The notes: generated by a model from the sequence alone, not told the origin. A stretch of DNA of 64,000 bases from Thalia democratica (GCA_965202585.1 OZ241832.1:30070001-30134000); one strand, 5' to 3'; counted from the stretch's first letter, positions 16,850 through 56,650 are shown. Translations and numbers: made by a program.

Positions 16850-17367
16850 TCAACACGCGTTGCTTTCTTCGTGCCTAACCAAATTTGGCAACAAATTAAA
16901 CTTCTTACCGCATTTTCTACAAGCAAAAACGGGTCTGAAATGAGTTTTAATGTGCGTGTTTAAAGATGACGAAGTATGAAACTTCTTGTTACAATGGGGG
17001 CAAGGGTATTTCGGTTCTGAATGATACTGCATGTGGATTTTCAGCTCACGTTTGCTTTTAAAACACCTTCCATCCGGGCAAATCTCGCACTTGAAATTTC
17101 TCTCCTTACTGTGAGTAACTTCATGGTCTTTCAAGTTGGATTTCGTGATGAATCTTTTGCCGCAAGTGAGACACGCGTAAGGCTTTTCTCCCGTGTGCGT
17201 CCTCTGGTGAACTTTGAGGTTAAATTTGGTTCGATAAGACTTGAGGCAAATTTCGCACTGATGAAACATTTTGCGCGCGTTTTTGCGAAGGCGTATAGGT
17301 TCTTCCGTGGCAATCGTCTCCTTTGATTTTGATAAATTTTCTTGGAGGTTCTGCACAGCACTGCTGA
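16850..17367 (-). CDS. Terminal exon with five C2H2 zinc fingers (last one C2HC-like)
   Basis: CEIC..HQRTH-TGEKPY-CLTC..HEVTH; CEICPDGRC..HMQYH; CPHC..HIKTH; CRKC..HEESNAC. Acceptor TTTTCAG at 17368-17374; the MFKFS start given in the ORF track is intronic. Confidence 0.93.
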
Positions 17368-20300
17368 CTGAAAATTTAAACATATATTAGGTGCCTTAAG
17401 TATTACTTAACTCGTGAGTTTGAATAGTATCTGTACTGTCGCCGCTACCCAAGGATTTATTGTGAATTTCTTCCAGATTTAAAAAACATGCTTTTTGTTT
17501 AACTTTCAATAAAAAAATTATTTAAGCTAAAAAGCTGTCTTTATTGGTATAACAATGTCAAAAAGACATTGTAAATCTACTTGCAATGTGTTTTTAATGA
17601 AAAATAAATTAAACAAAACGTTCTATTCTTATAATAATTTTTTCGTATTTAATACAAACTTCTGTACTTATAATGTAAAAACAGTATCAAGTTCCAGGTC
17701 TTTCCAATTTTTATTTTTAAAATACAGATTTTTCTTTTACTTAGATTGTGAAGTTCCATGTTTTTAAAGGATTCGATGTTTTTTGGCAACTCTGGTACTG
17801 TGTAAAAGTAGTTCAAAAATCATTAAATTATTTCAAAACTCAATAATTGAATGAAAGCTATCATAATTCATTTATTTTTAATTTAATATCAAACGAATCA
17901 AAATACATAAATAATTCAGAATTTTATCATTTTAGTAAAATAAATCAATTTACTATCTGTAGTTTATATATAACGAATTTAATCTCATAAATAGACATAA
18001 ATAATTAAAGGAAACAGATAGTGGCATAAGTTTAAATTAAAGTATAAGGCATTGTTCATAATAATATAACAAAATATATAATTCTAAAAGTTTGTTTTAA
18101 AAGGTTAAAACTTAGTTATAAATAAATATTAAACCAAAATAAAATATACATTTTTAACTTTTAAATAAAATTTTAATTTGAACAATTTAAAGTATTTTTT
18201 TAGAAATAAGTCAATATTTAAACAACTATGAAAAATCTAACTTTCTAACATGAAATAAATGGTATAAAGTGACAGAAAAATATTTCTTTTAAAATCTATA
18301 ATTAATAAGCATTAAACAAAAAGAATAATCAGGTCATATACTTAACTTTTTTAATGATAGGTCTTGAAACATGGTTGCCACTCGTTTTTTTTAATTTCCA
18401 GGTTTCAAAGTTTCCTTTAGGTTTTTAAAATTACACATTTTGGGTCTATTTTTAGTTTGAAGTAAAGGCTATAAACTGTTTTAAATAGAATAAAAACATT
18501 GAAAAGAAACTGTTAAACTTCTTTAAATGTGATTTTGAATATAATAATTTTTGATGATGAACAAAAAACATTATCTATATTTTTGTGTCACATCGAAAAT
18601 TTTATACTTAATATGTAAAAATTATTTAAAATTCCGGGTCCTTTTTGCCTAAATTGTCAAGTTCCAGGATTTTCAAGGTTTCCAGGTAAAGTGGCAACCC
18701 TGTCAAAACCCATACTAACTTTAATTTGAAATAAAGCTAATACAATGTAAAGTATTTATCATTTTTCATTAATACCGCTCGTTAATTAAGCTTCATTATA
18801 ATAACAGTAAAATGAATAAAGTTTTAATAAAAATTATAATAATTTATATTACACAAAAAATTGTAGATAAATATGATTTTTTTTAAATAAAGTAAATAAC
18901 TATCAGTTTTTTAGTTTGCTAGCTTCCAAACTTATGCTAAAAACGTTATTATTGTCAAGACAGAGAAAAACATTATTGTAAAAACATAAACAAATTTAAA
19001 CAAGAAAATGTATTACTCAATTATAATCAAGATACAACTTGAGGAATAAAATTACATTTTGTATTAAAAATATTTTAACTAATTTTTTTACTGGAAAGGC
19101 TAGATAAACTGTACGTTTTTCTAGAAGTTATATATCAGTAAGAACAAAATTTATATATTATTAATTGTTTTTAAGTTCAGTAGTTAAAAATACCTGAAGA
19201 AAAACCATAACTATTTTAGGAACTTATTTTTTATTTAGTTGCTAAATTATTTCAATTTATTTATATAGATTGCAAACTTTAATGAAATATATTTTAAACT
19301 TAAAACAAAAGGTTTGGTTTATTTGTGGTAAAAAAGAGAGATAAGTATAGAAACATCAGTACTTAAAAGATACTTTTATTGTATTTAATGATCATAACTA
19401 TTCAATAAAGTTATTTTACTCAGTAAACCAATGCATCAAAAACTTGAAACGTAATCAGAATAAAAACGTAAGTATAAAATGTATCAATTGTTTGATAATA
19501 AAAACAACAATATCCTGAAAAACAGCATTTTAAGTGGAAGAAATAAATGGTAGGCAAAACACACAGTTTTGTAAAACAATTAAGGACATAGGGGGTCCAC
19601 CTTTATTTTTACAAGTCAATCTTATTCTGTAGAGTTAAATATTAGCTATTTTACCCCTTAAAAAACCCAAAGAAGAATTTGAGATAAAAGTTGGTGAGCT
19701 CAATAGGTTCCTAACCAGGGGCGTCGCGTGGGGTGTTGCACTGCCGCAACTGCACCACCTTGAAATTTTGTAAGAAAAAAAAAAGTATCTATAACGTTTT
19801 CGTTATTTTTTAAACGAAATCTCTTTTAAAACTCCAATTTTGAAAACGACCATTTTGCCCACTTCACTGCCGCAAACTCTTAGCTGACTGCCGCAAATGA
19901 ACTCAAAAAAGCAAAATTTCTTCAAGAATTACCGCAAAATCAATATCTTGCGGTAAGTAAGTTAAGTTGAAAATTCCCTAAAACAGGACTTGCTTAAGTA
20001 TCATCTACAAGCTATTGTAAACATAAAGTAAAAACAAAGCTAAGCTACTGCAAAGTGCAAAGGATTAAGCTTAAGTTTATGTACCCCCATGATTTTTTAA
20101 ATTTAAGAGATCACTTCTATTAAAAAGAAACAATAAAAGAACAAAACTTGTCATAAATTACATATTTTGAAAAAAATAGACAAAAAACCTAAATCACCAA
20201 AGTCTTTAAAATTTGTTTTTTTATTTAAATCTGCATACATAAACTTAACTATAACTGATTATTGTTATTATAAAGTTAATAAAATATTTAATTAAATTTT

Positions 20301-23300
20301 ATTTAAATATTAAATTTGAGTGCTGAAAATAAATGTTAAGAAGTTTATTATAAACTTCTAGTTTACTCTTACAGAAAAATAATTTAGATTTATATTAAAT
20401 AAAAATTAGTATTTTTGATACAGTCACATATTTAAATAAAGTAAATAGCTTTAACTTAGAAATTTTGATTACTTAGAGTAGTTTAACATTTTAGGAGAAT
20501 TTAGTCTACTTTATATGACTTTTGGTTTAATATTTTTATTAACAAAGAAAAAATTTTAGATAAAATTGCTGAAACATGGTTGCCTTGCCTCATAATCTGG
20601 ATAACTTAGAAATATAAAAAAACTAAAGATGACCCAAGATAAATTAAAACAGACCAAATTAGAAAAATATTCAGGCTGACTAAAGCAGTTTTAGTATTTT
20701 ACTCTGAAAATAACAAGCTTATTTATAATTAAAAAATAAGTGTTTTACCCCTATGGCCACATGAAAACTAACTAACCAATTTTTTTAATGCTTTAATGGT
20801 TACATATTTATAATTTATCTTTAAATTTCTTGAAAAGTCAACAGCCTCACCAACTAAACTTAAAAAAGTTGAGCTCCTGAGAAAAATACTGTCATCAAAA
20901 TGAAAAACAAATTTAGCTTAAATAAAGAAAAGATACCCTTAAAGAACTATTGAATTTTAAACCTCCAACAAAAAAACATTAAATTTGGAAAAAAGTTAAC
21001 AAAAATCTAAATGTTTGTAAAACAAATTGTGCAAAATTTTGAGGGGTAAGGGGGGGGGAAGGGGTGTATAGGCTCTTTTTTCATGTTGTTCTTATTTTAA
21101 CGTTTTCAGAAAACTAATAGTTACTTTAAATAAACTTGAAATTTCCAATTAAACTTTTAGATACAACTAGTCAAAGCCAGAGAGTACAATGATTTATTAT
21201 ACAAGGAGCAAACCAAAACACCAAAAAAATACAATTTTACTGAAAACCTATATTCTCCATAATTCCTAAAGCAATTTTTATCAAACTTTTTATCCTACTT
21301 TTTAGAAAATTTTATCTTTTTGTTGAAGAGAAGTTTTAAATTTTTAAGTATCAATATATATTTTTATATATACAAAAAAATAATTACTTTTGTTATAACT
21401 TTTTTTTCTTAGTGTTTTAAATATCTATTTTAGCAAATTGTTTTGTTTTATAAAAGAAACATCGAAAGATTTTAAGGCCAACTTATAAAAAAAAGATATT
21501 ATTATAGTGATTTGATTTATTTGTTGTTCGAGTTTATATTATATTAATAAGGATTCTTTTGTACCACTGACTGTGAATTACCATATCTCAAAAATTAATA
21601 TGAATTTTTTATATTGATAAAATATGACTTTTAGTTAAATTAAAACTGTATAAAATAACTTCAGTAAAATAATTCTAAAGTAGATGATAAAATTGTTATA
21701 GAAAAAAGTCTTTATTTAAGATAAAAAAGAGTTTTAAAGTAGGGGATTTTTTAAAAATTCTGCACCACCTAATAAAAATACCACGCGACGCCACTGTTCC
21801 TAACAGAAGACTTAAACCAAAACACAATAAAAAAAAAGAGAATTTCACTACAAAAATATGTTCTCTTTTATTTTTAATCCAATATTCTTCAAACTTTCAC
21901 AGTAAATTTATTTCTAATAAATCAGATCTTTTAAACGCAAAACAAAAAATCTGATTAATGAAACCTTAATTACAAATATTTTTATTTTTTTATCTAAAAT
22001 TTCAAATTTATATATTTTTTTTAAATTCAACATTAAAAGTAAAAAATGTTTTCAGTGAATTAAAAGGTCTCTAGCTCAAAAATAAAGGAAATATATTTTT
22101 AGTGAAATATAAAATATTTATGAAAACTGGCAAAAACATATTGGGTCTATAGGTTTATACTGTAATTTTTTCACAAATTTTTTTTTATCTCTAAACTTAA
22201 CTGAAATTTTTATACTGTATAAACACTTATTTAGAGTTTATACTTTGAGTTTTCGTATAAGAACCAATGTTAAGGGCATAGGGGAGTTAAAAACACTTTT
22301 TTCACAATTTGATCTTATTTTATATAGTTTTTACTAAGCTACAAGAGGCTTTTCACGGATTTTAAAAATCAAAAATAACTTTTGAGATAGAGCCGGTCAA
22401 AGTTGGGGGCAACATTAGGTTTCTTATAGGAGGGGCAAACTAAAACAGCAAAAATAGACTATTTCACTAAAAATCTATATTCTTTTTTGTTTTTTATGAT
22501 AACTACTTCAAATGTTCAGGAAGTGTTTCTTAGTATATTTAGAAAATTCTGTCAGAAAGAATTTTGAAAACTGAAAAATAATTTTTTTATTAAAATATAA
22601 ACAAAATAAAACAGTTTTGTTTTTTTATTATAAAACTGCTAATTTAAATTTTACTTAACCTTGTTTCTGACAGAATTTTTTAAATATTGCAAGAAAAACT
22701 TGAGGTAGTTATCCTAAAAAACAAGGAGATAGATTTTTAGTGATATCTAGTTATTTGCCGTTTTAGTTTGTACCTCCCATAAGCAACCTATTGTTGGCTC
22801 CGACTTTGACCGGCTTTATATCAAAAACTATTTTGAACTTTTTTAATCTGTAGAAAGCACCTTGTAGCTTAGTAAAAAGTATATAAAACAAGATTAAATT
22901 GTGAAAAAAGTGTTTTAAACTCCCTATGCCCTAAATTTTTTTAATCTAAAAATATGCATTATACATCTAAAGCAGAATTTTAATTGACGAACCAAATTGT
23001 TCTTTTTGAATTGAATGTACATCACTGAACAACTAAATAAGAGTTCATCAAAATTAGTTTACCTTTTGACGTAGCTTTTATTGTTCTGTTGATAGGTGAA
23101 ATTACACCATTTGAATACAATACGAACTGGGGAACAATATTTTGTTTATTCATTACAAACTTATCACCATTTGAGTTCAAATTAAAGTTTATTGAGTGGA
23201 CGCCTGCTACTTCTGCAAAAATCATATAAAGCATTCAGAGAAACAAAACAACTGATTTAGCTTTTAGTTATATAAATGTTTGCATGTTTAAATAATTGGT

Positions 23301-26300
23301 AAGTAATGATCAGGTCTTCCATGACTTACTCAAATTTATACAAAACATAAATTTTGTAAAATAAACAGATCTTGTTTTATTTTAGACTTAAGTAAAAGAA
23401 AAAGAATCTTTGATTACTAATTAAGACTTGTATGAAATTAAAAATAAATTTAAGTTTTTCTATGTCAATAAAAAAACCCATTAAGAACACAGAAAAATAG
23501 CTAAAATTTTTGAGTACACTGTACACTAGGGTGCTTATAAATACGGCGAACGTTGAGTTTTCAGCTGGACTTTTTACACTTGGCAAGTATCACAAAAACA
23601 CCCTGTGAAATTTTTAAGACGATTTGAAAAAACTTTAACGTTAATGGAATTCAATTTTCGAAAAACCACCCCAATGGAAACTGTATTGGACCAAAAAAAC
23701 AATCTTAAAGTTTTTAGCTGATTTTTTTTCACATGTGGCCAATTATTACATAAACACATTGTGCACAATTTAAGATGATTAAAAGAAAGCTTTATGGAGA
23801 CAACTCTTAATTTTAAGTTATTTTTATCAATTTTTTTAAGTTTTATTTATTTATTTTCTTTTTTTCAAATATTTGAGAAACTCCTTCATAATATTTTTTG
23901 TTATTCATTTTAAATTGTGCACAATGAGCTTTTGTGATAATTGCCACTAGAAAAATGATTCAAGCTAAAAATTGTAATGTTGATTTTTTTTGGTCTTATA
24001 CAGTTTGAATTGTGGTGGTTTTCAAAAAAAATAGAATGCTTCCACCGTGAAGGTTTCTTCAAACAATATAAAACTTTGCACAGGGTGTTTTTGTGATATG
24101 TATAAGTATTGTTAACATATTTAGCATAAAAATTAAAAATAAAGTTAGTCAAGTTTTAATTTCCACAAACAAGTTAAAAATTGGTAAAGAACTACATAAA
24201 CAGAACTTTAAGCTACTTAAGAAAACTTACCTTTAATATTTGATTCAATTTCATTATTTTGAAGAGTTACTTCAGAGTTTTGAAAATAGACTTTACCATT
24301 AGTGTGAATACTAGCTTTACTTTTTTCATCAACATTATCATCTAAACGGTAAAAAAATATTCAAATAAAGAAGAAAAAACAAGATCAAACATGAAATACT
24401 TATTTTTTATAAGGTATTTGTTTGAGAAAACTAACAGAAATACTTTATTTCTTACATTTACTTATACCTTGTCTTGAAGTGTTATCAATCATATTTAAAT
24501 TATCATCATTAGTACACAACTCAACTGGTTTGATTTTTATTGATTCAACATTTATTGTGTTCCAAGTTTGGTTGTTAAAACTTGAGTTCCCACCTTCTGT
24601 TCAAGTAAATGTGTAAAAAGTTTCAAACAAATTAAAATTAAGTTAAATTTTCAAATTTACCAGTCCTGTTCTCAGGAGATTTATCAAAATATTGCAGCAA
24701 CTTGTTATTTTTGGATGTAACTTCATTTACTTTTAGTGGCTGTATTGTGGTATCTACAAAAATATATAGTTTTATAAGTAAATTATTTTCTTTATCAATA
24801 TAATTTACTTTACCATTCTCAGTTTTGTTTGATGTTTCATCTTTTTCTTTTATATGATCAACAAATGTATTTCTGTTAATGTTTTTCAATCTGAAATATC
24901 TATTGTTTAAATATGAAAGGATAATTCTGTTTTGTAACAAACTTAATTAAAAGTGCACACTCTTTATATCACGTAAATTTTTAAGTTTATAAATAAAAAA
25001 TTTTAATATGTCATTTACATAAAATATAGTGCAGTAATACAAAAGTATAGAGCCAAAAACTGTTTCATAATGACAGCAAAATTTTTATTAGATCTTAATT
25101 ATTATTATTATATTGTTTATTGTGCAATGTTGGACTCGGGCATCAAAACCTGATTCACTAAAACAGGACACACATTGAGAAAAATAAAAATAAAATAAAC
25201 TACATTTATATTCAACAAAAAAAAGTTATAAATAAAACATTAAACAAATTTAAAACTATAAAAAAATCTCATTAAACAGTTTTAACTTATTTGCTTGACA
25301 TAAAAGGCGATAACTTAGTACATCATACAAACAAATTTGTAGAAATTAACAAAATTAAGTTAATAGTCTGTTAGGGGGAGGCTTAGGGATATAAAACTAA
25401 TTAATATCACAAGTAAAAAAAACGAAGAAATCACTAGTTAATTTAGTTGGGACAAATACTATAAAAAAAATTTAATTATTTTTCTGTATTGTTTTTAAGA
25501 AAAGTTACTGAATTATACTGATATTTACACTATTTATATTAAATCTTTTTAGTTCTAAGCCATAACACATTCTTTGTAATCAAGTATAAAAAACTGTAGA
25601 AGTAAAAAATCTTACTGTGTATTTTTCAACATGATTTTTTCTAATGCATAAATTTTGTCTGATAGTTTAACATTTGCTTCAGCCATCATTCTTTTTTCAA
25701 TTTCCAAACTGTGATAACTTTAAAATTTTAAACTTTTTTTAATACTAAGGCAGATGAAACTTTGTCATTGTTAAACTATTTTAGCATTTAAGTTTACTAT
25801 TGCTAAAAAACTGTATTTGTTGTTTAAATTTTTTTTCTTACTTTTTAACTTGTTGCAGCAATTCAATGTTTTTATCAAACAGGTTTTTATTTTCCTTTTC
25901 CAAAGTGCAATTCTTGTTTTGTAAATTTTTGTTCTCTGAGCTTTGCTTTTCAATAAGCTGAATCAAGCAAGACATCAGAAACTCAGCTTGGTTTAAATCT
26001 TAAAAAAATAAATTTAGTTACTATACAGTCACTTGGAGTATGGTTAAAAACGTATTACAAAGTAAACTGAAAGTCCATGTTTTTAATTAAAATTTAACTT
26101 AAGGTTATAATTCAAAATCCAACAAAAATTATAACATCATCATTATGATTTGGAAAAAATCTATATTATTTGTATAAATACTAGCTCTAGTTTTTTCAAT
26201 ACCTGGAGAGTTTGTTTTATATTTAATGTTTTATGATTTTAGAACATAACATATATATACAACATGTTTCATTTTTACTTATATTGTAAATATTATCATT

Positions 26301-26801
26301 TAAAAGTTAAACAAACAAAATAAAATTTAGTAACATGCTTTTCTACGAAAAAAAATTATAAAGATTTTATTATAACCTTTTCTAGAACTGGTGTAACTCA
26401 TAATTGAGTTTTCATCATTAATACAAAACTCATCTGGTTCGATTTTGATTGGATCAACATTTATTGTGTCTGAAGTTTGGTTGTTAAAAATTGAGTTCCC
26501 AACTTCTGTTCAAGTAATAAATATGTAAAAAAATTCCAAACAAATTAAGTTAAACTTTATAACTTACCAGTCCTGCTCTCAGACGACTTATCAAAATACT
26601 GCAGCAACTTGTTTGCATTAGGTGTAACTTCATTTACTTTTAGTGGATTGTTATTAGAACAATGAAAACTTTCTGCTTCAGCCAGATTTTTATTTTCCCT
26701 TTCCAAACTGTAGTTCTTGACTCGTAAAATTTTGTTTTCTGAGCTTTGCTTTTCAATAAGCTGTTTCAAGCGAGTCATCAGAAACTCAGCTTGGTTGATA
26801 T
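16850..26801 (-). CDS. Gene A: coiled-coil/linker module plus C-terminal 5x C2H2 zinc-finger protein (at least ~528 aa; 5' end unresolved)
   Basis: Minus-strand exons 26801-26568, 26505-26377, 25998-25842, 25717-25616, 24890-24814, 24753-24661, 24596-24468, 23212-23063, 17367-16850; all GT-AG, phases 1,1,1,2,2,1,1,1,1, no stops. Heptad-like segment (LIEKQSSENKNLQNKNCTLEKENKNL...), IKIEPD psi-K-x-E motif. Confidence 0.75.
18370..18702. mobile_element. hAT-type MITE (CAGGGTTGCCAC family), copy-A-specific insertion
   Basis: CATGGTTGCCAC...GTGGCAACCCTG; absent at the paralogous site ~40675 (TTCTCAAGACCCATAC). Same family as 62949-63340. TSD degenerate. Confidence 0.75.
19716..21796. mobile_element. 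Non-autonomous hAT element, ~2.08 kb, perfect 8-bp TSD
   Basis: TIR CAGGGGCGTCGCGTGG / CCACGCGACGCCACTG; TSD TTCCTAAC at 19708-19715 and 21797-21804; single TTTCTAAC at the empty site in copy B (~41630). No long ORF inside. Confidence 0.9.
22274..22931. mobile_element. Fold-back MITE with GGGCATAGGG termini at a TTAA site (Kolobok-like)
   Basis: TTAA|GGGCATAGGGG ... CCCTATGCCC|TAA; arms pair imperfectly over ~300 bp; empty site AATGTTAAATTTT at ~42085 in copy B. Further ends of this family at ~19584, ~20750, ~39020, ~41495. Superfamily call (RR termini plus TTAA) is inference. Confidence 0.75.
23588..24098. mobile_element. Palindromic MITE (~510 bp)
   Basis: TATCACAAAAACACCCTGTG ... CACAGGGTGTTTTTGTGATA with long imperfect arms; partial homologues at ~36290-36470 and ~42520-42960. 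Confidence 0.65.
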
Positions 26802-29800
26802 CTTAAATAAAAAATTATTACCATCAATCACTTTAAATTCGGTGTTAAATACAAAGTAAACATAAAATTCATTGTTTTTTACTAAAATTAAATGTAGTAG
26901 GTCATAATTTATGAACTTTTTACTAATCCACCACAAGCTTTTTACTGATTTTAAAAACTCTAAATATTTTTTAAAACCAAAGTAAGGTAGACCAATTGAA
27001 ACATTTTATGAAAAATACAATTCAAATGAACAAAAAACTATTCAATTTGTAGTCTATCTTCTTGCCTAACTTTAGAGTATAATTTTTAAACTAATTTAGT
27101 CTAGATTTTACTAAAAGAAAGTATTAATTTATTAATTTTTATGTTTGTTAGATTAATTTTTTTCTTGCAAAAGTATTATATTTTTTTTTTACTAACTAAG
27201 ATTTTTTGTTTATATTTACACTAAGAATCGTTTTGTATGATTAAATAAAATATACAAAATAATTTTCCTGAAAACTTCAACATATTTAGCTCCAAACAAA
27301 TAAGAAATATATGTTTGTTTTTAAAAATTTACTGTTAGTAAAAATTATATAGCTACTTACAAGTTCTAACAATAAAAACCAAGATAAAACTTACTATAAA
27401 AGATACATTTCAATTGTATTTACAGTTATTCGTATATATGTATAAATAAAACTAACTTTCATTTAATACCTTGCTATTTCCAATTTGATCCATTTTAAAA
27501 CTAAAATTTGGTTAAATATTATTTAATAGTTCATTTTCTGTAAAAGTATCATTTAAGTACATCACTGAATAGTATATTTTGTGATTATATCCAAAGTTCT
27601 CATAAGGAGAGTAAGCACAAAATAAAAAAGGTGTTTTTAGTAAAATTTGTATGCAATTAATATAAAATACAAACTTTAAATCATAACTAAAAATTTTTCA
27701 TAAATAATTTATTTAGTTTTGTTAAAAAAGTTATATATAATATAAAGTAAATTTGCTTAATTTACAACTACATTTTGTCTTAAAAGTATACAGAATTTAA
27801 GAAAATGAGAAAATATAGTGTTACCATTACAAACTTAAATTTTTTCAAATAAAAATACAGTAAAATGTTTAAATAAATTTCAAAATTAAGGTCATAGGTG
27901 AAGGGGTAATAATAAAATTTTATAAAATTTAATATTTTCTTTTACTATTTTTTTCTAAAAGCTATAACTATAAACTACAAGTGAGTTTTTATAGAATATA
28001 AAATTTTCAATGAATTTCAAGATGCAGATATTTTTACAAAAAGCCCCAATTGACAATTCTCTGGAAATTTATTAAATCACTCAAAGTCTATATTATTTCT
28101 AAAATGAAAACTAGAAATTTTTAGAAAATATTCCTTTAATAGTTTTAAAGATGATTTCAAGTGTTGGAATTTCTAAAAAAAGGTACATTTTTGACAACAA
28201 ACTTATTTTACAAATCCTGTTAAAGTATTGCTCATTACGATACAAATTTGCAGTTTATAAACATCATTAAATTTCAACATTTTTTTCAGAGGGTTTGTTG
28301 TGGTCAAATCGACAAACATACCTGATTACTCTTTTTTGCCTACAAACAATAGGTTTTAATTAACAGTCAGTAGCACAAAACTTTAAATAATCACTTCAAA
28401 ATTAATAAAGATCATGTTCTTAAACAAAATTGGTTATATAAATTCCAAAATATTGAAACTGTATTAACTTAATCCCATTCTAGATCTAGAAACAATCTGC
28501 GCTGATATTTCTTTAGCCTGATTGTGTGGCAACCCAGATTTAAGAAATAAGCCTTGTTTAATAAAAATTTAAACAAAGAAAAATATAAACTTCAACCACT
28601 GAATTGTTGACACTGCATAAAGGTTATGGCTCGAATGTCACTGCTCAAAAACTGATCAGTATATTTGGTTGTAAACTTCACAAGAAACATTTGTCAGATG
28701 TTTTTGCTTTAATTTTTTTTTTCTATTAACTCTAACTTTAGTTGTATCAGATAAATTTCAAACTGTTTTTTTTTATCTCCAGTGTCCAGGACAATGCTAA
28801 CCCTTTTGGTCAGACAGTAAACAATTAAATTTTAATTATGAACAAAATTATTGTCATAAATACAATACTACTTATACTAATAAACAAAAATAAAATAACA
28901 GAAAAATAAACAAATGCAGACTTTTTTTTTCACAAGTACTTTTGTTTATTCAAAACATTTTCAAGTTAAAAACAGCTTATTCAAGTAGAACGTTTAGCTG
29001 CATCAGTATTTTCACGCTCTCATTCTGGGAATAAAATACTTAAACTCAAGATTTAAAAAATGAAAGATGTCATTTTGTCATAGAAGTAAAATAATTTTAA
29101 AGCAATATGTTAACATAAAATTATAATGTACTGTAATGTTTTCATTCTCAAAGAAAATGTTGCTTTTTAGGTGAATTACCAAAGCTACTTTTAGTTTTAA
29201 AATTCCTTTTTGTCAGGGACACCAATTTAAAACTCAATTTTCTTAAGTCAGGGTTGCCAAAAGTTTTTCCTAAACTTATTTCAGGTTTACTGATTTCTAT
29301 AAGGTTTTAAAACAAGTTTTTTGTTTATTTTAAGTATAAAGTTAAACTTAACATATAAAACCTTTTTGAAATATTAAAAAAATTTAAAGTTATATATGAT
29401 ACAAAATTTTTTAATCTTTAAGAGAAATTTTTGGTATCTAGTCAAAATTTTCATATTTTACACATGCAATTAGTTTTAAGATTTTCATTGGGTTTTTTGT
29501 TCAAAGTTCAAGGTTTTTTTATTTTATTTCTCTAGTTCAAGGATTTTAGGTTTTTTGGAAACCGTGTAAATTGATGATTTACAACTACAAGCTAAAATAT
29601 AAAAAACCTTACTTATAGTTTTTTATAAAACCTTCAGTAGTTTATTAAAGCTTAGAAGCCCTTTTTTACATGTCTATATACAGCAATAATTTAAAAATGT
29701 AAATTTTAGTTAAAAATCGAAAATGTATTAAAGGTTTTGTTTACTACAGTATTAAAAGGAAGCTTAATCATTATCCAGTATTCTGACATTTCCGAAAAAT

Positions 29801-31942: not shown

Positions 31943-31975
31943 CACAAATATATTTCAACAATTTTCTTCAGTGTG
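31943..31975 (-). ncRNA. Minimal type I hammerhead ribozyme motif in Penelope 3' terminal region (left arm)
   Basis: Reverse complement reads CACA-CTGAAGA-AA(ATTG)TT-GAAA-TATA-TT-TGTG. Confidence 0.65.
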
Positions 31976-32136
31976 ATTACAATTGTAACAAGGTAAAACA
32001 AATTTTAAACTTATATAGCCTTTTTAATTATATGAGAAATTATCAATCAATTAGTAAAAAAAACCCTAAACTATAACAAAAAATTAAAAACAACAAGGAA
32101 AACATAATTAACTGTAACATTTAAAACAAAAAAAAA

Positions 32137-45387: not shown

Positions 45388-48300
45388 CTTAAGAAAATAT
45401 ATTTACTATCAACCACTTGAAGTTCGGTAAAAATTACAATGTTTTTATTAAAATTTAATTGTAGGTCATAATTTATGAACTTTTTACTAATCCACCAACA
45501 GCCTTTTACTGCTTTACGAAACTCTTAGTTATTTTTGAGAATCAAAGTAAAGTAGCTCAATTGAAATACTTTATGGAAAAAACGATTAAAATAAACTTTA
45601 AACTACTCAATTTATAGTCCATCTTCTTCCCTAGTTATAGGGTATAAATTTTAAACTAATTTAGTCTAGTTTTTACTAAAAGAAAATATTAATTTATTAT
45701 TCTTTATCTTTAGTAGATTAATTTTTTTCTTACAAAAATATCATAGTTTTAATTTTACCAACTAAGAACTGTTTTTTATATTTATACTAAGAATATATAT
45801 GACTAAGTAAAACATAAGATAATTTTCCTAAAAACTTAACATATTAAGCTCCAAAACAAAAAAGAAATGTATTTTTATTAATAATCAGTTCTTTGAATTT
45901 AAAAATTTTTGCTAGTAAAAATTCTATAAGCTACTTACCAGTTTTAATAACAAAAACAAAGAAAAAGCCAACTATAAAAGATACATTTTAACTATATTTA
46001 CAATTTTTCAATAATTTGTATAAATAAAACTAACTTTCATTTAACACCTTGCTATTTCCAATTTGATCCATTTTAAAACTAATAACTTATTAATTATTGT
46101 TTAATAATTCCTTTTCTGTTAAAGAATAATTTTAGTACATTATTGAATAGTAAATTTTGTAATGATGTCCAAAGTTCTCAAAAGGAGAGTAAGCAAAAAA
46201 AAGGTGATTTTAATAAAATTTGTATGGAATTAGTTTAGAAAAAAACTAACCATAAAATATAACTGTAAAATTGTACATAAAGAGTAATTTTGATTTGTTA
46301 AATAAATAATATATAATGTAAAGTAAATTTGCTTAAATTACAATTCTATTTTATCTCAAAAGTATACAAAATTTAAGAAAATGAGAAAATACAGTTTTAC
46401 CATTTTCGACTTATATTTTTCATAATATAATACAAAAAAAAGCTTAAACAATTACAAATTAAGGTCATAGAAAAGGGGTAATATTAGAGTTTTACAAAAT
46501 TTAATATTTTCTCTTACTATTTTTTTTCCTTAAATGTATAACTATAAACTACAAGTGAGTTTTTAGGAATAAATCTTTTTTTTTTAATTTTTAGATACAG
46601 ATACTTTCACAAAAAGCCACACCTGACAGTTTTCTGGAAATTTCTTAAATCACTCAAAGTCTATACTATTTCTAAAATAAAAACTTGAAACTTTCAGAAA
46701 ACATTTCTTCAATAGTTTAAAAGTTAATTTTAAGTGTTGGAATTTCTAAAAAAGAAAAAGTAAGTTTTTGACAACAAACTTTTGATGAAAAATGCAAGAA
46801 TTCCTGCATTAATATATTATATTATAAGTAGATAAACAACTAACAGTAAAAATTTGACAAAAATGGTTAAAAAATTAAAAAGATAGATTTTTAGTTTTTT
46901 TTCTTTGTTCTTTATATTTTGCTTCTTTCTTAAGAAACCTAATTAATCACACTAAATTAGATTACATATACTTTAAGAGTTACTTTGCATTTTGCAAGTG
47001 TTAAAAAGTATCTGGTAGCTAAAAAGGAGCTAAAAAAATTCAAATCATCTTTTAAATAACAAAGTGAGCTTCATATATTGTAAAAATTTAACAGTAAAAA
47101 GTAATTATTTATGTTGAAAACTGAAGTATGTTTAATTTTTAAACTTATAAAGCCTGTTTAAATTATCAAACTAAAATATTTTTCAATTGAAAATATTTAA
47201 TGAACATTGTTTTTAAAACTTTTCTATGTTTAAAGTAGACCACTTGTATAGATAAAATAAGAAAGCAAATAACAATTAATAATTCTGAATTTGAGTTAAC
47301 TGTTTAAATTTTTAAAACATGTTCTAATACATCACAGTAAAACATTTATTGTTTAATATGTTAAATCAAATGGCATTAGCTACAATGATAATTTTTAAAA
47401 TTAACATAAAATATCATTAAATTTAAAATTATGAAAATAAAGTTTTTTAAAATAGTTAAACAATATACAGCCACCAACATAATCAGCAACAAAACTTAAA
47501 ACAACACCCATGGCATAATAGTTTGTACTAAGGCAAGTAAGATAAAATTTAACCTTAAAATCAAAAATTATTAAATTAAAGTATAGTATAGTTTACTACA
47601 ACTATTAATTGGATTTACATTTTAAGTACTACACACATACACATTAAAAACATAGTTAACATTATTTATGTATAATTTACTAGGCTGTTGGGTAAAAGTA
47701 TAACCCTGTAAAATGAAGGAATGCAAAAATTAACAAACTTGGTTGGTTGTAACATAATTTGCTAATTGCTATTTGATACCAACTGCTACATTTCTTTTAT
47801 TACTATGAACAAAAAATTGAGTGTTCATATTAAAAAATCATGCACAAAATTATATTATTAATAACTTTCTGCTTAAGAAAGTATTTAAATAGAATCAAAA
47901 CTTTTATGCATGAATTAAACTAAGCAAATTTATTTCAAAAATATTTCAACTGATATGAGTATTAACTAGTAGAACTTTGAATTATAGATAACTAGATAAC
48001 TAGATAACAGAGTCACCACTTTGAGTCAAAATAAAAACTGCCCTGAGTCATCCTTAGTTTTTTAATCCTTAAAAATAAATTTTGCCTTATGCTCATTTCT
48101 TTTTGACAAAAAAAGGAAAGTAGTGTGTGTATGCTCCCTAAACTAATGAGGAAATTTTTAAAGATTCAACTTTTATAGTTTAAATCGATTGAGATTTAAA
48201 GACATAATTTTGGATGATTTTATATAACCATGTTAGTTGAATTTTAATATATATATATATTGAAAAAAATTAGAATTTTTTTTTGACATTGTAATTGACT

Positions 48301-51300
48301 TACTTAAATCTTACCATATAAAGTGCTCACTTGCACAAATAAACTTAAATCATGATAAATATTTATGTTAGATAAAAAAATATTACAATTTAGTTTTTAA
48401 GTAAATTGAAAAACTAACCACAAGGCAAGAAAATTTTACTTTAATGAGTATGAAAAACATCATACTCACTTTTTCCTCTACAAATTTTTTGAAGGTGAAA
48501 CAAACAAGCTGTCATCACCTGTAATTCTACCTGCCCCCTTATAATTAACATTAAACTAACCATAAAAACTAAAATAAAACTATCTGTTTAAGTAAAAAAA
48601 AACACTAACAAGGTTAAAATTTCAACACTAAAAATTACAAAGTGTGGGAAAGTCATAAAGCTGAAATCCTAAAGTAAAAATCCGCCACTACAATAAAAAC
48701 ACATCAACAATCGGATTAAGTTGTCACTGCCACCAGTGTAAACTAACAATCATCAGTTACAAATTCAAATAAACAAAAATATAAGTAAAATTGTCAAGTT
48801 CTACAAAAACATTGAGAAATTAAGAAAATAATGAAAATAAAAGAAGAAAATAAAAATAGTAGTAATAAATTAAAGTTATCATTTGTAGTAAAAAGTTAAA
48901 TTGATTAAAAAAATGCAATAGTACTTGAAAAGTTTGTTACTAATACCCTAATACAATAGTCAAAAAAAAAATTTATTATTATTTTACTTCAAACTCTAAC
49001 TTAAAGTAAAAAATGGTCAAATAAAAAGTTAAATCAACTATCTTGAAATCCAACAAAGTAACAAAACAAAATACTTAGAATAAAATATTCAAAATCAACA
49101 TTTATTTAATATAACTATAATTATAAATAATAATAATATTTATTTAATGTTCATAAATAATAACTATAATATAATATTTTTTAACTCTTTTACATTCACT
49201 CTTTTATAAACCAGACAATCTTAAAATAAAAGACCCAGCACAACATGGTGTACCTATAACATGCAAAATACCTAAAGCAATTTAGGCCAATTCTTGTTCT
49301 AGGTCTTTCGGTTGAAAATTTTAATTTCATTGAAAACTTTGTATTATGAGAATAGAATAGCAAGTGTAAACCTATTGCGTTCCAAATCAAACACTGTTAA
49401 AGTATTACCCATCGTGTTACAATTTTCAGTTTATAAACATCATTAAATTTTAACATTTTTTTTAACAGAGGGTTTGTTGTGGTCAAATCAACAAACATAC
49501 CTGATTACTCTTTTTTGCCTACAAAAGATTGGTTTCAAATAACAGTCAGTAGCACAAATTTATTTATAAAAACTTCAAAATCAGTAAAAACCATGTTTTT
49601 GAACAAAATTAATAATATTAAGTAAAAAATATTGAAGCTGGATCAACTTGTTCTTATTCTAGATCTAGAACAAATCAGTCCTGAGATTTTTTTTTAATCT
49701 TAAAACTATCCTAGAAATTTTTTAAAAAATCAACATGGTCTAAAGTCATCCTTAGTTTTTTAAAAATCTAAATATTCTGAGTTATTCCAAGTACCCAGAG
49801 TGTGAGGAGACCCAAATAAAAGAAGTAAAATTTGTCAAATAAAAGCTAAAACAAACAAAAAATACAAACTCAATCTCTGAAACTGAATATGGACACTAGC
49901 ACTGTCTGCAGGAAGGTTGTGGCTCGAATCTCACTGCTCAAAAACGGATCAGTATAATTTAATAAACAATAAAAAGAACTAATTTTGTTTTTTTTTATAA
50001 CTACTAATACTTATTCAAAAAAAACTTAATTAATAAGTTGAAAATACTTCATGTAAAAAAAAGTTTTGTTTAAAAAATATTTAATTTACATTTTAATTGA
50101 ACTTTAATGAATTTTAAAACATTACATGGTTTTTGTACAATAAAATTATATTTTATATTATAAATTTCACAATAAACATGTGTCAGATGTTTTTGATTGA
50201 CTCTACTTTTGCTCTTAACTTTCTCTAACTCTAACTTTAGTTGTATCAGATAAATTTCAAAACGTTTTTCATTAAGTGTCCAAGACAATGCTAACCCTTT
50301 TGTTCAGAGAGTAAACAATTACATTTTTAGTAAGAACTTTTTTTTTGTCATAAAGAAAATATTCCTCCTATGTTTTTGAAAAAATGAACAAACGCAGACT
50401 TTTTTTTCACATGTACTTTTGAATTATTCAAAACATTTTCAAGTTAAACAAGGCTTATCAAAATAAAAGCTACATCAGTATTTGCACTCTCTCATTGAGG
50501 GCATCAAAAGTTTTAAATTCAAGTGTCATTTTGTTACTGAACTATATTTATTTATAACTGTTATGTTAACAAACAATTGTAAAGCTTTATAATGTTTTGA
50601 TTCTCAAACAAAATGTTGCTTTTTAGGTGAATAACCAAAACTACTTATAGTTTTAAAATTTTTTCTTGTCAGGGTTGCCAAAGGTTTTTCGTAAACTTCT
50701 TTCAGGTTTTCTGAATTTAAAAAAAGATTTCAAAAAACAATTTTTTTTTTATTAATACTAAACTGAAACAAATTATTTGTGAAATATAATTTTTTTAAGA
50801 TAATGTAAAGCTACTTTTAATGTGTTTATTAATAAAAAAGTATATATGGTACAAACATTTTTATCGTTAAGATAGATTTTCTTATCCAATTAAAGTTATT
50901 TTATGTTATATGTAAACTTAATATTAAGTTTTTTAGTTATTTTTGATCAAAGTTCAAGGTTTTTTTTCAAAATTTCACAAATTCAAGGTTTTTCAAAGTT
51001 TTCAGGTTTTTCAGCAACTTACCTCTTAGCTGAAGTTTGCTGACCTTTTAATTAGAAACTATAAATATAAAAAATGTTAATCATAGTTTTTTTAAGACTT
51101 CAGTATTTTAATAAAGCTAAAGTTTTTTTTATTTCTTTCGCTCATAGACCAATAATTTAAAAAGGTAAATTTTAGTTAAAATTTGATAATATGTTAACTA
51201 ATTTGTTTACTAAAGTATTAAATGGAAGATTTATCGATATTTGTTATTCTAATATTTCCAAAAAAAATAACACAATTTCGCAGTTAAGAAAAACAATTAT

Positions 51301-51418
51301 AGTAAGTTTTAAATTCTAAATCTTCACAAACAAGTTCTTCAGAGCTCTAGGAATCGGCTGTTTAAATATTAAAACGGTTCAACAAGTTTTTATACTTTAT
51401 TTTTGTTTCGAAAAACTA

Positions 51419-52165
51419 CAGTAGACTACCGCTTAAGTACGCACTTTTTTTGGTACGCACTTATCCAGAAAGACAAAATCGAGAATCCATTCTCATTTCA
51501 GCATTGAAAACCCTAAGAAGTTCCCTCATATTATCTCATATGTTGACTTTGGTGGTGCGACTTTACCTTTATCCTTAGACTTGTTCCATAGAGTCATTTT
51601 CTGACGCTTTTCTCCATTTCTCCATCCATTTTTCTAAACTTCTCTAAATTTTTCTAAAATTTCTAAATTTTTTTTTATTCAAAAACTTTCAGAATATTTG
51701 CAAAGGAAAGGCTAATATTAATGTGACATAATATCAAACTACTTAACCACAAAAACTAGTTACTAATTTTATAAAGTCAAAATAAACATGTAAAAAGAAA
51801 CAACAGCAACAAAAAAGTAAAGTTAAAAAAAATTAATGAGCATCTTATTATTATGCACTTATACTATAAATGTTTCTACTGATATAAACTTTCTTACAAA
51901 AACAGTCCTGAAACGTTTTTCTTTCAAAAAAAAAATGAAACACTTTTTAGCTAATGGAAAATTAAAATAAATGTATTACTTTTTTATTTTATTTAAATTA
52001 AAAAGACTTGTTTATTTGGCTTAATTATTTGGTGGCTAGTTGTAAGAAAGAAAACAAACAACTAAATTTCATATTATACTATGTCGTCAAAAAGTACGCA
52101 CTACCCGTGCTAAGTACGCACTTTTTGGTCGGGTTCAATTTGCGTACTTAAGCGGTAGTCTACTG
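51419..52165. mobile_element. Tc1/mariner (pogo/Tigger-like) MITE with perfect 25-bp TIRs
   Basis: CAGTAGACTACCGCTTAAGTACGCA / TGCGTACTTAAGCGGTAGTCTACTG, TA on both sides; absent at ~29955 in copy A. Confidence 0.9.
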
Positions 52166-53171
52166 TACTTACTAGAAAATATACGTAGTGAAACAAACTG
52201 AATTTTTATAAAAACAACTTTAGATATTTTACTTATTAAAATACTAAAACACGTTTTCAACCTCTCGTAGTCTCTTATACTTTCTTTACAAAGATATTTT
52301 ATATTTGTTTAGTAAGAAAGCTGTAGTTATATAGTTATACTGGTACTTCGAAAGTTTACCATTATAAGAAAATTATATTACCATGGTTGCCAAATGTCTT
52401 TGGCAAACGTTTTCCAGGTTTTAGTTTAAACTGTAAATTTTATGTTTTTTGGCAACCTGTATCACAGATTTAAAATAATAATTCTTGCTGTTACAACAGA
52501 TAAAATTCGAATAAGATATTTTTGCTTGGCAACAATCTTGAAGACTGCAGTTTGCCTATTCCTGATTAAAACAAAAATTTCTTATCTTCTCTTTCTTTTC
52601 TCCTTATCTTGACTTGCATCAGTATGACACGTAACCTTGAAAACTTTCTCTTAAACGCTTGGATGAATAAGGATTTTAGCTCAAAACTTTCCACAAAACT
52701 TAAACGGTTATTAAGTTCAATTTGATATGCCGTTACATTATGTTTAGGAAAGGTGGGTTAGGGATAATGGTATAGGTTAAAAATGAAATGAAAAAAATAT
52801 ATATCTATTTTTAACTATATATGAAAATTATTTGCAGATACTTGAAGCAATCCGCTTATTCTACTGAGTTATGTTTAAAAACCTGTTATAGTGAGCAAAC
52901 TGTTTGACCACGAAAAACAATCCATGGATTGGAAAAACAACATTTTGCGACCTGGTTTCTTCCTCATTTGGACTCATCAAGCAGACATGGTCACAATATT
53001 TTTTGTTGTGAGTATACCTGCATAATGATAATTAAATATTGATAACTAATAAATAAATTTAAACAAAACTTAAACTTTTTTCAGGTAAAATCTTTAGAAA
53101 ACGCAATATTCACACGTTTTCAATCATGGATTTTATTCTTTACTATTAAATTAAAGGTGAGTTCCCTATCT

Positions 53172-53430
53172 CAAGAATCGGCAAACTGTGACCCGCGGGA
53201 CAAATTTGGACCTTCAAGCCGAAATCTGCTGCCTGCGAAGTACTTTTTAGCTGAAAACCTATCATTAAAAAACACAAACAAAAACTTTTTTGGTTTAAAG
53301 TAGTATTTTAATATTAATAAGTTTATATATTTTCAGATAACTGCGGCCCATAGAAGACGTACTTCTACAAAGAACGGCCCGCGAGCAACTTTTTCTTAAA
53401 AATTTGTTTACTTATTACAAAACATCCCTG
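53172..53430. mobile_element. Degenerate hAT-type MITE (CGGCCCGCG family)
   Basis: CAAGAATCGGCAAAC...GACCCGCGGG...CGGCCCGCG...ATCCCTG; GC-rich island; TSD unclear. Confidence 0.45.
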
Positions 53431-53773
53431 CTCTAATCAGTGCTTAATTTACAACTTAATTTTAAATGTATTTACACAATTTTAGAAAGTCTAGTTATTT
53501 TTAAAATTTTAATTTTAAAAGTATTTAACCATAAGTTTGATTTGAAACATTTAATAAAATCATTTTGCATTTGTTTTAGATCGTTATTAATTTTTTTCCT
53601 GTTTTTATTTTTATAACAGCAAAATGCACCCAACAATAGACACTTTTAATAAAATGTTATATGCAAAAGTTTGAAATATGTTTTAAGCAAAAAAGATGTT
53701 AAGTCCACATGAGTACAGCTCATAAAAACTTCATTTTATTGTTTGCAACAAGCTTGTAAATTTGTAGCTTGTT

Positions 53774-54515
53774 TTACACTTTTCTTTTCCTTATCACGGG
53801 CAGGGCTATGAAGAGATCATCAAAAACAACTTTTTTTCCAATCTGCTTTCTAACATCTTGCTCAAATATTTCTGTTGGGATTTTATTATTAATAAGATCG
53901 CTTATTAATCTTTCAACACTGCGCAGAGCATAAATGTTTTTGCCTGATTTCTTCTTCTCAAAAGCTTAATTTTTGATTTTTTGCAAGACTTATAAACCTT
54001 TAGCAAGTAACACTTTGTCATATTCAAACATAGCGTTAGGACACTTCAAGATGCTAACAGCTGATCTTCTACTTCTTATCAAAGGCAAAGCTCTGCAGAG
54101 ACCATTGAAGTTAATGTTCCCTGTCTGTTTTCTTACTTGTCGTTCGAATGTTTGCATAAAAATTTTAATCCATGACAAGTTTGCCAATAGATCTTTATAC
54201 GTTATGCGGGTCGTAAGTGTTTTTTGCCAGAATTTTTCCAACAATTAGCTTTGCTTCTGATTTTTCTCAACACATTCAAGCCCTTCTTAAGCATCATACC
54301 TTCCTCAACGCTACCATTTAACTCACTGAACAAGTTTCTAGTGGTATTTTTAACAACACTTTGTTCTTTCAGCATCTTATATGGGATATGCTCTTGATCA
54401 TACACAGTTGGAGCTTTTCTTTTAACGATAAAACGTTGTTTTCTGTGTTGAGCTTCCGACAAGTAAAATTCTGTGGAAAAGTCCAGTGATTCAAAACGAT
54501 TTTGGTAAAAAGAAC
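53774..54515 (-). pseudogene. Decayed paralogue of the tandem TAFH-like terminal exon
   Basis: Acceptor TTCGTTGCAG retained (54516-54525, phase 1); frameshifts near 54200-54225 and in-frame TAA at ~53990 and ~53966; ends ...LPVIRKRKV-TAA like the intact copy. Confidence 0.85.
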
Positions 54516-56650
54516 CTGCAACGAAATTGGACAACTTGTTAGTTTTAAAACAAACTTTGGATTATAAAACAAACAAGTTAAGTTTGCGGAACTGTTTTAG
54601 GTCCTAAATATAACCAGTTTAGAAATATTTTGGATAAGCTTTACTTTAAATAACTAAGTAAGTATACTTATAAAAACAAAATAACTGCATATAATTTTTC
54701 ACATAAAAAACTAAAATTAAAGTTAATAAATAACAAAATTAAAGTTTAAAACTAGTGATTGATTTTGAAACACAACTCAGGATTTTAAACTTTAATTGGT
54801 CAATTCATATATGTCAGGTGCTAGGAGTTACCGTAAGTTCAAACATTAATTTTTTAATAAAACTCAAAAGACATAATGTAGCTTATGTAAAAACAGAATT
54901 AATAAAAATATTCAATAAAAATAAGTGATTAAGTGTTTGAAAACAATTTCAAGGTTTAGTTCAAACTATCTGAGTTAGCATTGTAGGTTTAGATCGTTTT
55001 TGTGAACAGAAATACTGAAAATAATATAGATTTTATACCAAATGATCATCTATAATATAAAAATCGAAAAAACTACAATAAATACAACGACTACCACTTT
55101 CAAAGTTATTAATCATAAATTTTTATACATTTGCTTAACTTACTTAAATATTATTTTTGCTGAAACGTTTTAATTTGGAAAATATTAATACGATAAAACA
55201 AGAAGAGTAAATGACTTTTCAAAACCTCTAAATTATTTTGGAATACAAAAAAAAAAGAGTTTTTATTAAAACAAATTTAACCAGAGTTGTTTGTTTTGCA
55301 AATCAAAAAACGTTTAACGACTGTTTCAAAGCTTTAATTGCAGTTAAAACTAAGATTCAATATCTTTAGGTACGTTTTTTATACTCTGTTTTAGTCTGAT
55401 GACCTACTAAAATAATAAAGTAAAAGTAATAGTCACAGTATATTGTTGTTACAAAAGAAAATAACCGCATCAGACATTTAAGTTTAAAGTAAATGTTTTC
55501 TTAAGATATAAATGCTTATTAAATTATTCTTAATTGTTGCAATAACTTATATTTGTTTCTAAAATAAACCAATATCGAGTTAAAACTAGTCTCATAAATT
55601 TTACTTTCTAAAAAACTCGTTTTTGTTTTGTCTGAAGGTATCAATTTTTTTGTGTACCATATTAAAAGACAAGTTATTTACTTCTAAGCGGAGTAATAGA
55701 TTTCAAGGTGTTTTATAATAATATTGGTTTAACTCCACGTAGTTACTGTTTTAACAGATTGCGAATAAAAAAATCATTTAAGTATAACTTGCGCATGAAA
55801 TTAAAAGAATAAAATTAAAACTTTTGACGAGTTGCACTCTAGATAGTTTAGAGAATATATTCTTCATAGAAAAATAGCTTTTATCTTTCATTTGTTTCAT
55901 TTATAACTACTAAACAAATAAATCTAAGCAAGAGTTGTCAACAGTTAATAATATAATTTAGAAAAAATTAACCGCGAAACATTAAACAATATTTGTTGTT
56001 GTTGAAATTTTTGTAAACATTAAACTTTACACCTGCGAATTTATTTTTGATATTATCTTATATAAATGAACACAATTATTATTTTCAAGATTTAAAAATT
56101 TTAAACATTTGAATTAAAAAGTAAAATTATATAACTTACTTAATTCAAAAAGTTTTTTTATTTAAAAAACCAGAGAAGTTTGAATATTTTTTTGAAAATT
56201 AACTTTGAATTTAAAATAACACGACCAATTTTAAAAGGCTTGTGTGTATAAATTATGTTTGTTGTAAGATATAAACATAAATTTAACATTGAAGATATAG
56301 ATATAAGTATAAAAATTGTTTGAAAAAAAAAAGATAATTACTGAATCTAATTTATCAATACTAATTTAAAAATTTTATGTGAATTTTCTAAATATTAATA
56401 ATTTTGTAATTATTTAATACACGATGAAACTTTGTAATCGTTTCATTAACTACAAAATAATGCAATTTGTTTCTGTAGTTAGATTTAAGTGAAGTGTTTT
56501 ATCTTATTAAATTTGATTACAAATTTTTACACATAAAATTATAAGTTACATGGCAATTCGAACTCTTGAAAAAATGTTTAAAAGGCCACAACTCAAAAAG
56601 TAATATACATTTGAAAATATAAAAAGATGCGTATGTATGTCTATCTTATA

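Follow-up and report, generated by a model that had tools for sequence, protein, structure and literature searches.

A chimeric zinc-finger/TAFH-like gene at a tandem-duplication junction of Thalia democratica and its probable origin

The 64,000-nt stretch of the Thalia democratica genome analysed here (GCA_965202585.1 OZ241832.1:30070001-30134000, called the window below) contains two related genes, A and B, that differ in their last exon. Gene A ends in a C2H2 zinc-finger (ZF) exon and gene B in an exon encoding two TAFH-like modules. Our results make it very probable that a tandem duplication fused the promoter and the first ten exons of the ZF gene to the last exon of its neighbour, and that the product, gene B, is expressed as a spliced transcript. 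The original prediction, which was made from the sequence alone, had placed such a fusion of ZF 5' exons and a TAFH-like terminal exon at the duplication junction, and it is supported by the geometry of the duplication, the reading frames and a contig that joins 42202 to 38121. The window has 25% G+C and no N runs and holds animal-type spliced genes and retroelements; the genes of interest all lie on the minus strand.

Tandem duplication and the gene at its junction

The duplication was mapped by self-BLAST of the window. Two colinear direct units with shared end points were detected in an X-U-U-Y layout, unit 1 at 17493-38573 (~21.1 kb) and unit 2 at 38585-54922 (~16.3 kb), strand being not applicable to either. 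The segments 17493-30931 and 38585-52738 are colinear in blocks of 58-84% identity (mostly 67-84%) that are interrupted by copy-specific insertions, and a second homologous pair, 37113-38562 and 53500-54922, consists of the junction-side and the 54-kb copies. Read along the minus strand, unit 1 comprises the TAFH-like exon of the junction, a spacer into which a Penelope-like element has inserted, the promoter and exons E0 to Ei of gene A, and most of A's last intron. Unit 2 comprises a broken TAFH-like exon, the spacer, the promoter and exons E0 to Ei of gene B, and the distal portion of the last intron of B.

The junction window, given by the ends of the high-scoring segment pairs, is 38562-38585 and falls inside the last intron of gene B; the sequence below it resembles 54.9 kb and the sequence above it resembles 17.5 kb. 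The proximal breakpoint (17493) is inside the last intron of the ZF gene, ~126 nt upstream of the ZF acceptor, and the distal one (54922) is ~400 nt upstream of the conserved acceptor of the TAFH-like exon. The duplicated unit had been predicted to run from ~17520 to ~54870 with its junction between ~38500 and ~38620, and a self dot-plot had been proposed to fix the breakpoints. Self-alignment fixed them within ~50 nt of these estimates or between them, refining the outer edges to 17493 and 54922 and narrowing the junction to the interval given above. Both breakpoints had been assigned to the last introns of two neighbouring same-strand genes; this held for the proximal one, in the ZF gene, and the distal gene is inferred.

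The tandem duplication is real and is neither a haplotype nor an assembly artefact, because the copies diverge by ~16-33%, carry copy-specific insertions and are connected by an independent DNA contig of run X3 (record 18, 37835-38792), which crosses the junction at single-copy depth. The prediction had already considered an artefact less likely on account of copy-specific transposable element (TE) insertions and divergence, and this was borne out. We found no support for an artefact, though X3, the run that best covers this DNA, may be the assembly's own sample. Such an origin is effectively refuted by the many indels and different TE insertions between the copies, by the independent Logan contigs of X3 over the junction, and by a B-specific spliced transcript, which has 0-1 mismatches to copy B; in exon Ei, copy A differs by 19%. 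The duplication is old, with a synonymous divergence of ~0.3-0.6.

The joining of the two parts of gene B is seen in a contig. Runs containing the window come from two organisms and from marine metatranscriptomes. Four of them were compared on 37250-43249, where two metatranscriptome runs matched repeats only. Run X6, from the source organism (47 M letters), has zero depth on unique intron bins; its library type is not on record, and its transcriptome nature is inferred from this exon-only coverage. Record 25 of X6 (1081 nt, depth 14.9) matches 37250-38119 with 0 differing letters and then 42200-42353 with 1 differing letter, and it extends 32 nt below 37250, into the 3' untranslated region (UTR), and 25 nt beyond Ei. 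As the dinucleotide AC could belong to either piece, the join is read as a canonical GT-AG splice 42202>38121. This junction, which is in frame, had been named among the tests of the prediction and is the decisive one. A promoter belonging to the TAFH-like exon itself, which had been named as one of the counter-cases, is addressed in part, as at least one transcript is spliced into this exon from Ei.

The exon chain Ea to Ei was built by exon-wise alignment of A and B, in which the splice sites are conserved. In gene B, the coding part of E0 lies at 46035-46071 (ATG at 46071, with the same phase-1 donor as in A), and E0 is intact in both copies. It is followed on the same strand by Ea (45154-45387), Ed (44014-44106), Ee (43658-43734) and Ef (43507-43599), placed by the A/B exon alignment, together with Eb (44965-45090), whose acceptor has moved by 3 nt with the frame kept, and Ec (44272-44386), which has a 42-nt in-frame deletion relative to A. 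Eg (43317-43445) ends in AG, as expected of the exon that precedes Ei in the X6 contig. Eh (43081-43189) is crippled by a 2-nt deletion at its donor, and its inclusion would lead to a premature stop at codon 354. Ei (42202-42351) has 150 nt and ends in phase 1, and is covered by the X6 contig. The terminal exon, the junction copy (37361-38121), keeps an intact 252-codon frame that encodes a ~74-aa disordered linker, two TAFH-like four-helix modules and a stop codon, and its 3'UTR reaches to at least ~37218. With Eh skipped, E0 through the TAFH-like exon form one open frame, which encodes a protein of 604 amino acids (aa).

Skipping of Eh appears to be the case in the transcript. The second piece of the X6 contig runs 2 nt past the first base of Ei, so the upstream exon must end in AG; Eg ends in AG and Eh in AA. 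No third piece of this contig was found within 37250-43249, though Eh lies inside this interval. It suggests that the B transcript joins Eg to Ei. The core of the gene model in the original prediction stood, and the Eh donor deletion, the first coding exon E0, an internal exon duplication and a gene-conversion patch had been missed by it.

Both genes A and B are under purifying selection. In the shared exons, comparison of A with B gave a ratio of nonsynonymous to synonymous divergence (dN/dS, omega) of 0.30 at a dS of 0.32, the check that had been proposed for them; the indels in these exons are in frame only, and the introns are full of gaps. On the branch to B, with the transcript contig L003 of a close relative as the third sequence, dS was 0.219 and dN 0.044 (omega ~0.20). 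The junction exon compared with L001, a contig with a related exon described below, showed an omega of 0.39. In a neutral simulation that used the base composition of the window, the probability that the whole coding sequence of B stays open was <1/3000 at >=0.10 substitutions per site, and that for the terminal exon alone was ~1% at 0.10 and 0.03% at 0.15 substitutions per site. Chance does not explain an open frame of this length in gene B.

From these positions the following order of events is proposed. A segmental tandem duplication of ~16-21 kb would have spanned the region from the last intron of the ZF gene to a point upstream of the TAFH-like terminal exon, whose donor gene would have lain upstream of the ZF gene on the same strand. 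The boundary between the units would have put the duplicated ZF promoter and exons E0 to Ei upstream of the duplicated TAFH-like exon. Because the Ei donor and the TAFH-like acceptor are both in phase 1, splicing out of the hybrid intron (42201-38122) would produce the in-frame mRNA of gene B. Its protein would be the N-terminal helical module of the ZF protein with the five fingers swapped for a disordered linker and two TAFH-like modules, and gene A would have kept the original architecture.

Gene A and the transcripts of a close relative

Gene A has a frame open from E0 to the ZF exon and encodes 575 aa with exon Eh or 538 aa without this cassette. The coding part of E0 (27457-27493, ATG at 27493) has the phase-1 donor GTTAGT and aligns to nt 2-76 of L003, and the 5'UTR continues upstream of it without interruption to at least 27531. 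Ea (26568-26801) has AG/GT boundaries, is 90% identical to its counterpart in B and is rich in helix with a zipper-like segment. It is followed by Eb (26377-26505), Ec (25842-25998), Ed (25616-25708), Ee (24814-24890), Ef (24661-24753) and Eg (24468-24596, with an alternative donor 12 nt downstream), of which Eb, Ed and Ee were placed by the A/B exon alignment. Eh (24231-24341) is a phase 1-1 cassette exon, and Ei (23063-23212) has 150 nt and ends in phase 1. The two penultimate exons, 23212-23063 and 42351-42202, had been predicted to be both 150 nt long and to end in ...IKATSK-G in phase 1, and to be followed by acceptors at 17367 (C2H2) and 38121 (TAFH-like). These statements agreed with our models, with AG/GT flanks on the 150-nt exons and both terminal exons open in the matching frame.

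The terminal exon of gene A (16850-17367, 3'UTR to ~16658) encodes five C2H2 zinc fingers and a stop codon. Its ending matched Pfam zf-C2H2 at 3.2e-25 in 5 stretches and zf-H2C2_2 at 8.6e-22, and it contains tandem C-X2-4-C...H-X3-5-H fingers with TGEKP-type linkers. Compared with L002, a second contig of the relative, the ZF exon shows a dN/dS of 0.16, which is in agreement with purifying selection. For the N-terminal module, there were zero matches to Pfam families and zero database proteins outside its own cluster; a search with the Eh+Ei module alone returned the protein P0003 itself as the sole match.

An internal exon duplication is visible in both genes (26801-24468 and 45387-43317), in which Ea is the fused counterpart of Ec and Ef, Ec being a paralogue of its 5' half and Ef of its 3' part, and Eb is a paralogue of Eg, at 82-90% identity. 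This internal duplication is older than that of A and B. Most exons in the internally duplicated region are phase 1-1 and can be skipped with the frame kept.

The A-type splice was found in a relative. A protein search with the ZF exon led to P0003 and its cluster-mate P0032, both from JGI sample 3300018744. Contig L002 maps onto the window as Eh-Ei-ZF exon, and L003 maps as E0, Ea-like, Eg-like, Ei and ZF exon; both are spliced, their joins coincide exactly with the predicted exon boundaries, and L003 supplied the start codon. The junction 23063>17367, the other splice that the original prediction had asked to be confirmed, is thus seen in two spliced contigs of a close relative. L003 joins Eg directly to Ei without Eh, and for this reason Eh is regarded as a cassette exon in this gene family. 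The synonymous distance of the relative's transcripts in the 5' module is 0.16 to A vs 0.30 to B.

On the other hand, the ZF exon of the relative has a dS of 0.56 to copy A (16850-17367), far above the 0.16 of the 5' exons, and this excess may reflect exchange among zinc-finger paralogues. At the 5' end of L002, nt 1-129 are unspliced intron sequence ending in TTTAG directly before Eh, and there is one extra A in the poly-A run at the start of Eh; either partly processed RNA or an assembly slip could account for this anomaly.

The two TAFH-like copies and the origin of the chimera

The parental architecture persists in the window and beyond it: gene A is intact, the relative shows the 5' module joined to a ZF exon, and the 3' exon of the other parent is present, in broken form, on the minus strand at 53774-54515. 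This copy retains its acceptor AG. Its frame is disrupted by 1-nt indels near 54426, 54226 and 54168 and, relative to the outgroup, by a gap near 54476 of a length not divisible by 3; it also contains three in-register TAA codons at 54197, 53992 and 53968. The acceptor AG and ~400 nt of the upstream intron are conserved between L001 and both copies in the window. This conservation suggests that the TAFH-like exon already served as the spliced end of a gene and did not stand alone. L001 follows the context of the 54-kb copy over 54516-54967, that is, to 45 nt beyond the breakpoint, and matches the junction copy only below 38515. As judged from these alignments, the TAFH-like exon would once have been the last exon of a separate upstream gene.

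The evolutionary rates of the two copies are different. Compared with L001, the broken copy has a dN of 0.21 and the intact junction copy a dN of 0.33, at similar dS, and the three-point branch omega is ~0.2 for the broken copy vs ~0.5-1.0 for the junction copy. Because of its low dN and branch omega, the broken copy was probably under constraint for a long time and broke only recently. The change in the junction copy may be read as relaxed or adaptive after the fusion. The original prediction was right that the junction copy is intact and the 54-kb copy decayed. Its suggestion of a takeover by the chimera remains conjectural; the broken copy was probably constrained until recently. In addition, the last 180 nt of the exon (37361-37540, minus strand) are 93-97% identical to 53774-53953, vs ~50-80% elsewhere in the exon and intron, and probably represent gene conversion between the two copies. 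The history may include gene conversion or more than one event, and the geometry of the junction is unaffected by this.

Several observations weigh against a duplication-born, expressed and selected gene B. The evidence of B expression is one spliced contig of modest depth from one run, in which the exons upstream of Ei are unseen, and the skipping of Eh depends on a 2-nt detail of the alignment together with the lack of a third contig piece. The evidence for the A-type splice is limited to the transcripts of the relative, whose per-exon identities are mosaic with respect to A and B; gene conversion or exchange among paralogues could give this signal, or L003 could itself be a paralogue. The raised branch omega of the junction copy is compatible with relaxed constraint. 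Outside the converted patch the two TAFH-like copies have ~62% identity, vs ~70-80% for the A/B parts. Finally, no convincing 5' exons of the parental TAFH-like gene were found in 54.9-64 kb, either in lists of open reading frames (ORFs) or in a scan for open frames with a phase-1 donor at their end.

Some of these points would fit a real chimeric transcript without a selected function, that is, a by-product of the duplication drifting to loss. The crippled Eh of gene B, the single contig, the faster junction copy and the prevailing fate reported for chimeric genes, which is loss (PMC5460883), are all in its favour. However, the 604-codon frame is intact at a synonymous divergence of >=0.3, a state with a neutral probability of <1/3000 in our simulation, and the sister copy of the terminal exon gained at least six disabling lesions. 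Moreover, the 5' module on the B branch has the low omega given above, the indels in the exons used by B are all in frame, and Eh is a cassette exon that is skipped in the relative too. A functionless by-product is therefore considered unlikely.

Other points could suggest a different history, in which the 5' module was originally joined to the TAFH-like exon and the ZF ending of A is derived, or in which an earlier, independent duplication gave rise to the pair of TAFH-like copies. In favour of these histories are the divergence between the TAFH-like copies, which exceeds that of the A/B parts, the greater closeness of L001 to the 54-kb copy than to the junction copy, and the negative search of 54.9-64 kb for the parental 5' exons. 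Nevertheless, the order TAFH, 5' module, TAFH, 5' module, ZF is the product of one duplication of a TAFH-5' module segment, and an unduplicated 5' module could have spliced downstream only to the ZF exon. The last intron of A aligns to that of B up to 126 nt from the ZF acceptor without a TAFH-like remnant, the transcripts of the relative show the 5' module with the ZF ending, and the visible conversion patch offers a ready cause for uneven divergence. We consider a reversed or multi-step history very unlikely, and fusion of the ZF 5' exons to the neighbour's last exon remains the preferred reading.

Two further ideas were tried and rejected. The TAFH-like and ZF exons as alternative 3' exons of one ancestral gene did not agree with the last intron of A, which has no TAFH remnant and in which the homology ends 126 nt before the ZF acceptor. 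The use of L001 and L003 as clean outgroups was given up as well, because L001 is closer to the 54-kb copy than to the junction copy and L003 has a mosaic relation to A and B.

The TAFH-like ending, known systems and neighbouring features

The assignment of the B ending to TAFH was approached by sequence and by fold. Against Pfam TAFH the ending gave an E-value of 1.4e-3 and 19 bits, below the cut-off of 27, over profile positions 25-51 only. The AlphaFold (AF2) model has a mean predicted local distance difference test score of 68, with 80-94 in the folded parts, and consists of a ~74-residue linker and two four-helix modules. Aligned by VIA-align, module 2 superposed on the TAFH domain of TAF4 (2p6v) with a Z of 10.1 and a root-mean-square deviation of 2.5 A over 84/97 residues, and module 1 on that of ETO with a Z of 7.1 (2pp4) and 6.9 (2knh), the next hit being at 5.0; the AF2 model was built on a two-sequence alignment, and VIA Z values below ~13 can arise among helical bundles. 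TAFH domains were the three top VIA-align hits. Foldseek against the PDB and Swiss-Prot models gave E-values that were not significant, and only its probability ranking led to TAFH, with TAF4 and ETO highest. In the model, the B ending is TAFH-like at the fold level, with family membership not demonstrated.

Relatives of this exon are rare. A PDB sequence search with it gave nothing relevant, a word-index protein search gave zero matches, the best score in the ESM Atlas was an uninformative 0.64, and scans of JGI metagenomes with the TAFH-like exon and with exon Ea found zero relatives. An exhaustive search of 1.84 billion representative proteins returned P0001 (55% identity) as the sole real relative, which is encoded on the 1.6-kb Tara Oceans contig L001. 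A second match, P0002, is a 3972-aa bacterial-type repeat protein in which a 30-residue stretch was matched 12 times, and it was treated as compositional. The modules of B are modelled as four-helix units of ~80-90 residues that superpose on the TAFH or NHR1 domain (PF07531) of human TAF4 and ETO/MTG8, and they differ from those proteins in being tandem domains at the C-terminus without the histone-fold region of TAF4 or the NHR2-4 of ETO.

Families of C2H2 zinc-finger paralogues with domain swaps share an N-terminal effector or dimerisation module and differ in their C-termini. Genes A and B resemble them in their ~80% identical N-terminal modules with helix-rich zipper-like segments and IKIEPDE-type motifs, with only the terminal exon different. 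Unlike in those families, the other ending belongs to a second, duplicated gene and not to an alternative 3' exon of one gene. In TAFH domains, a hydrophobic groove takes up short helical peptide motifs of transcription factors. Gene B would share the probably dimerising N-terminal module of A and offer a peptide-binding TAFH-like module instead of DNA binding. In this exchange a shared module loses a DNA-binding ending and gains a putative protein-docking one, which predicts that A and B interact or compete.

The mechanism is well known from Drosophila, where chimeric genes arise by the same textbook route, with same-strand breakpoints that join the 5' end and promoter of one gene to the 3' end of another, with the parental genes at the flanks and the chimera transcribed, as in gene B. 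Most of the chimeras known from Drosophila are young and polymorphic and tend to be lost, whereas gene B is old (dS ~0.3-0.6) and has kept its 604-codon frame. It also differs from them in its occurrence in the AT-rich genome of a marine animal, in the loss of a cassette exon, in the decay of the 3' exon at the parental position and in that both of its modules are lineage-restricted. Gene B is a well-documented chimera, unusually old and intact, and mechanistically it is unsurprising. The interest of the locus lies in part in this contrast, as the chimeric genes that have been caught at their formation are mostly polymorphisms of recent origin and disappear quickly. The record of its birth is nearly complete in one 64-kb window, with both units, a junction narrowed to ~22 nt, the retained parent and the decayed exon, and the loss of the cassette exon after the fusion and the gene-conversion patch can be read there too.

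It is also possible, though on balance we doubt it, that the chimera is a long-lived functional replacement, in which the TAFH-like module was moved under the ZF promoter and onto a dimerising N-terminal module. Gene B would then pair with A and either bring a co-factor-docking module to the targets of A or titrate A as a finger-less partner, and the original TAFH-like gene would have become dispensable and decayed. If true, nature would here have produced an equivalent of the oncogenic ETO fusions, which attach a TAFH domain to a DNA-binding partner. Annotation should treat gene B as a fusion gene in its own right and not as a truncated zinc-finger paralogue with an orphan exon.

Other features surround these genes. 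The hybrid last intron of B contains a very high-copy repeat at 38650-40050 (strand not given) and 40865-41020. Its k-mer depth in X3 is ~2e5 vs ~100 for the flanking unique DNA, and it occurs also in contigs from X6 and from two marine metatranscriptomes. The insertion at 38650-40050 is a gap in the A/B alignment and is not present in the last intron of A. Copy-specific insertions comprise ~2.1 kb in the last intron of A (19715-21797) and ~2.5 kb upstream of the promoter region of B (46855-49388). The Penelope-like retroelement at 31909-35725 is a recent insertion present in unit 1 only, and has a 609-aa ORF (32137-33966, minus strand) that encodes a reverse transcriptase and a GIY-YIG nuclease. 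In its nested arrangement, copies with 99.6-99.7% identity are either inverted (31909-32840 vs 35725-34794) or direct (33832-34465 vs 34465-35098). Upstream of unit 2, a 77-aa ORF at 58012-58245 (minus strand) has a G+C content above its surroundings, begins with a hydrophobic signal-like segment and contains a KR dibasic site; being without a phase-1 donor, it was rejected as an upstream exon of the TAFH-like gene. Downstream of gene A there are local tandem repeats at 10405-11539 and 6819-7553, with periods of ~545 nt (84-88% identity) and ~342 nt (77%).

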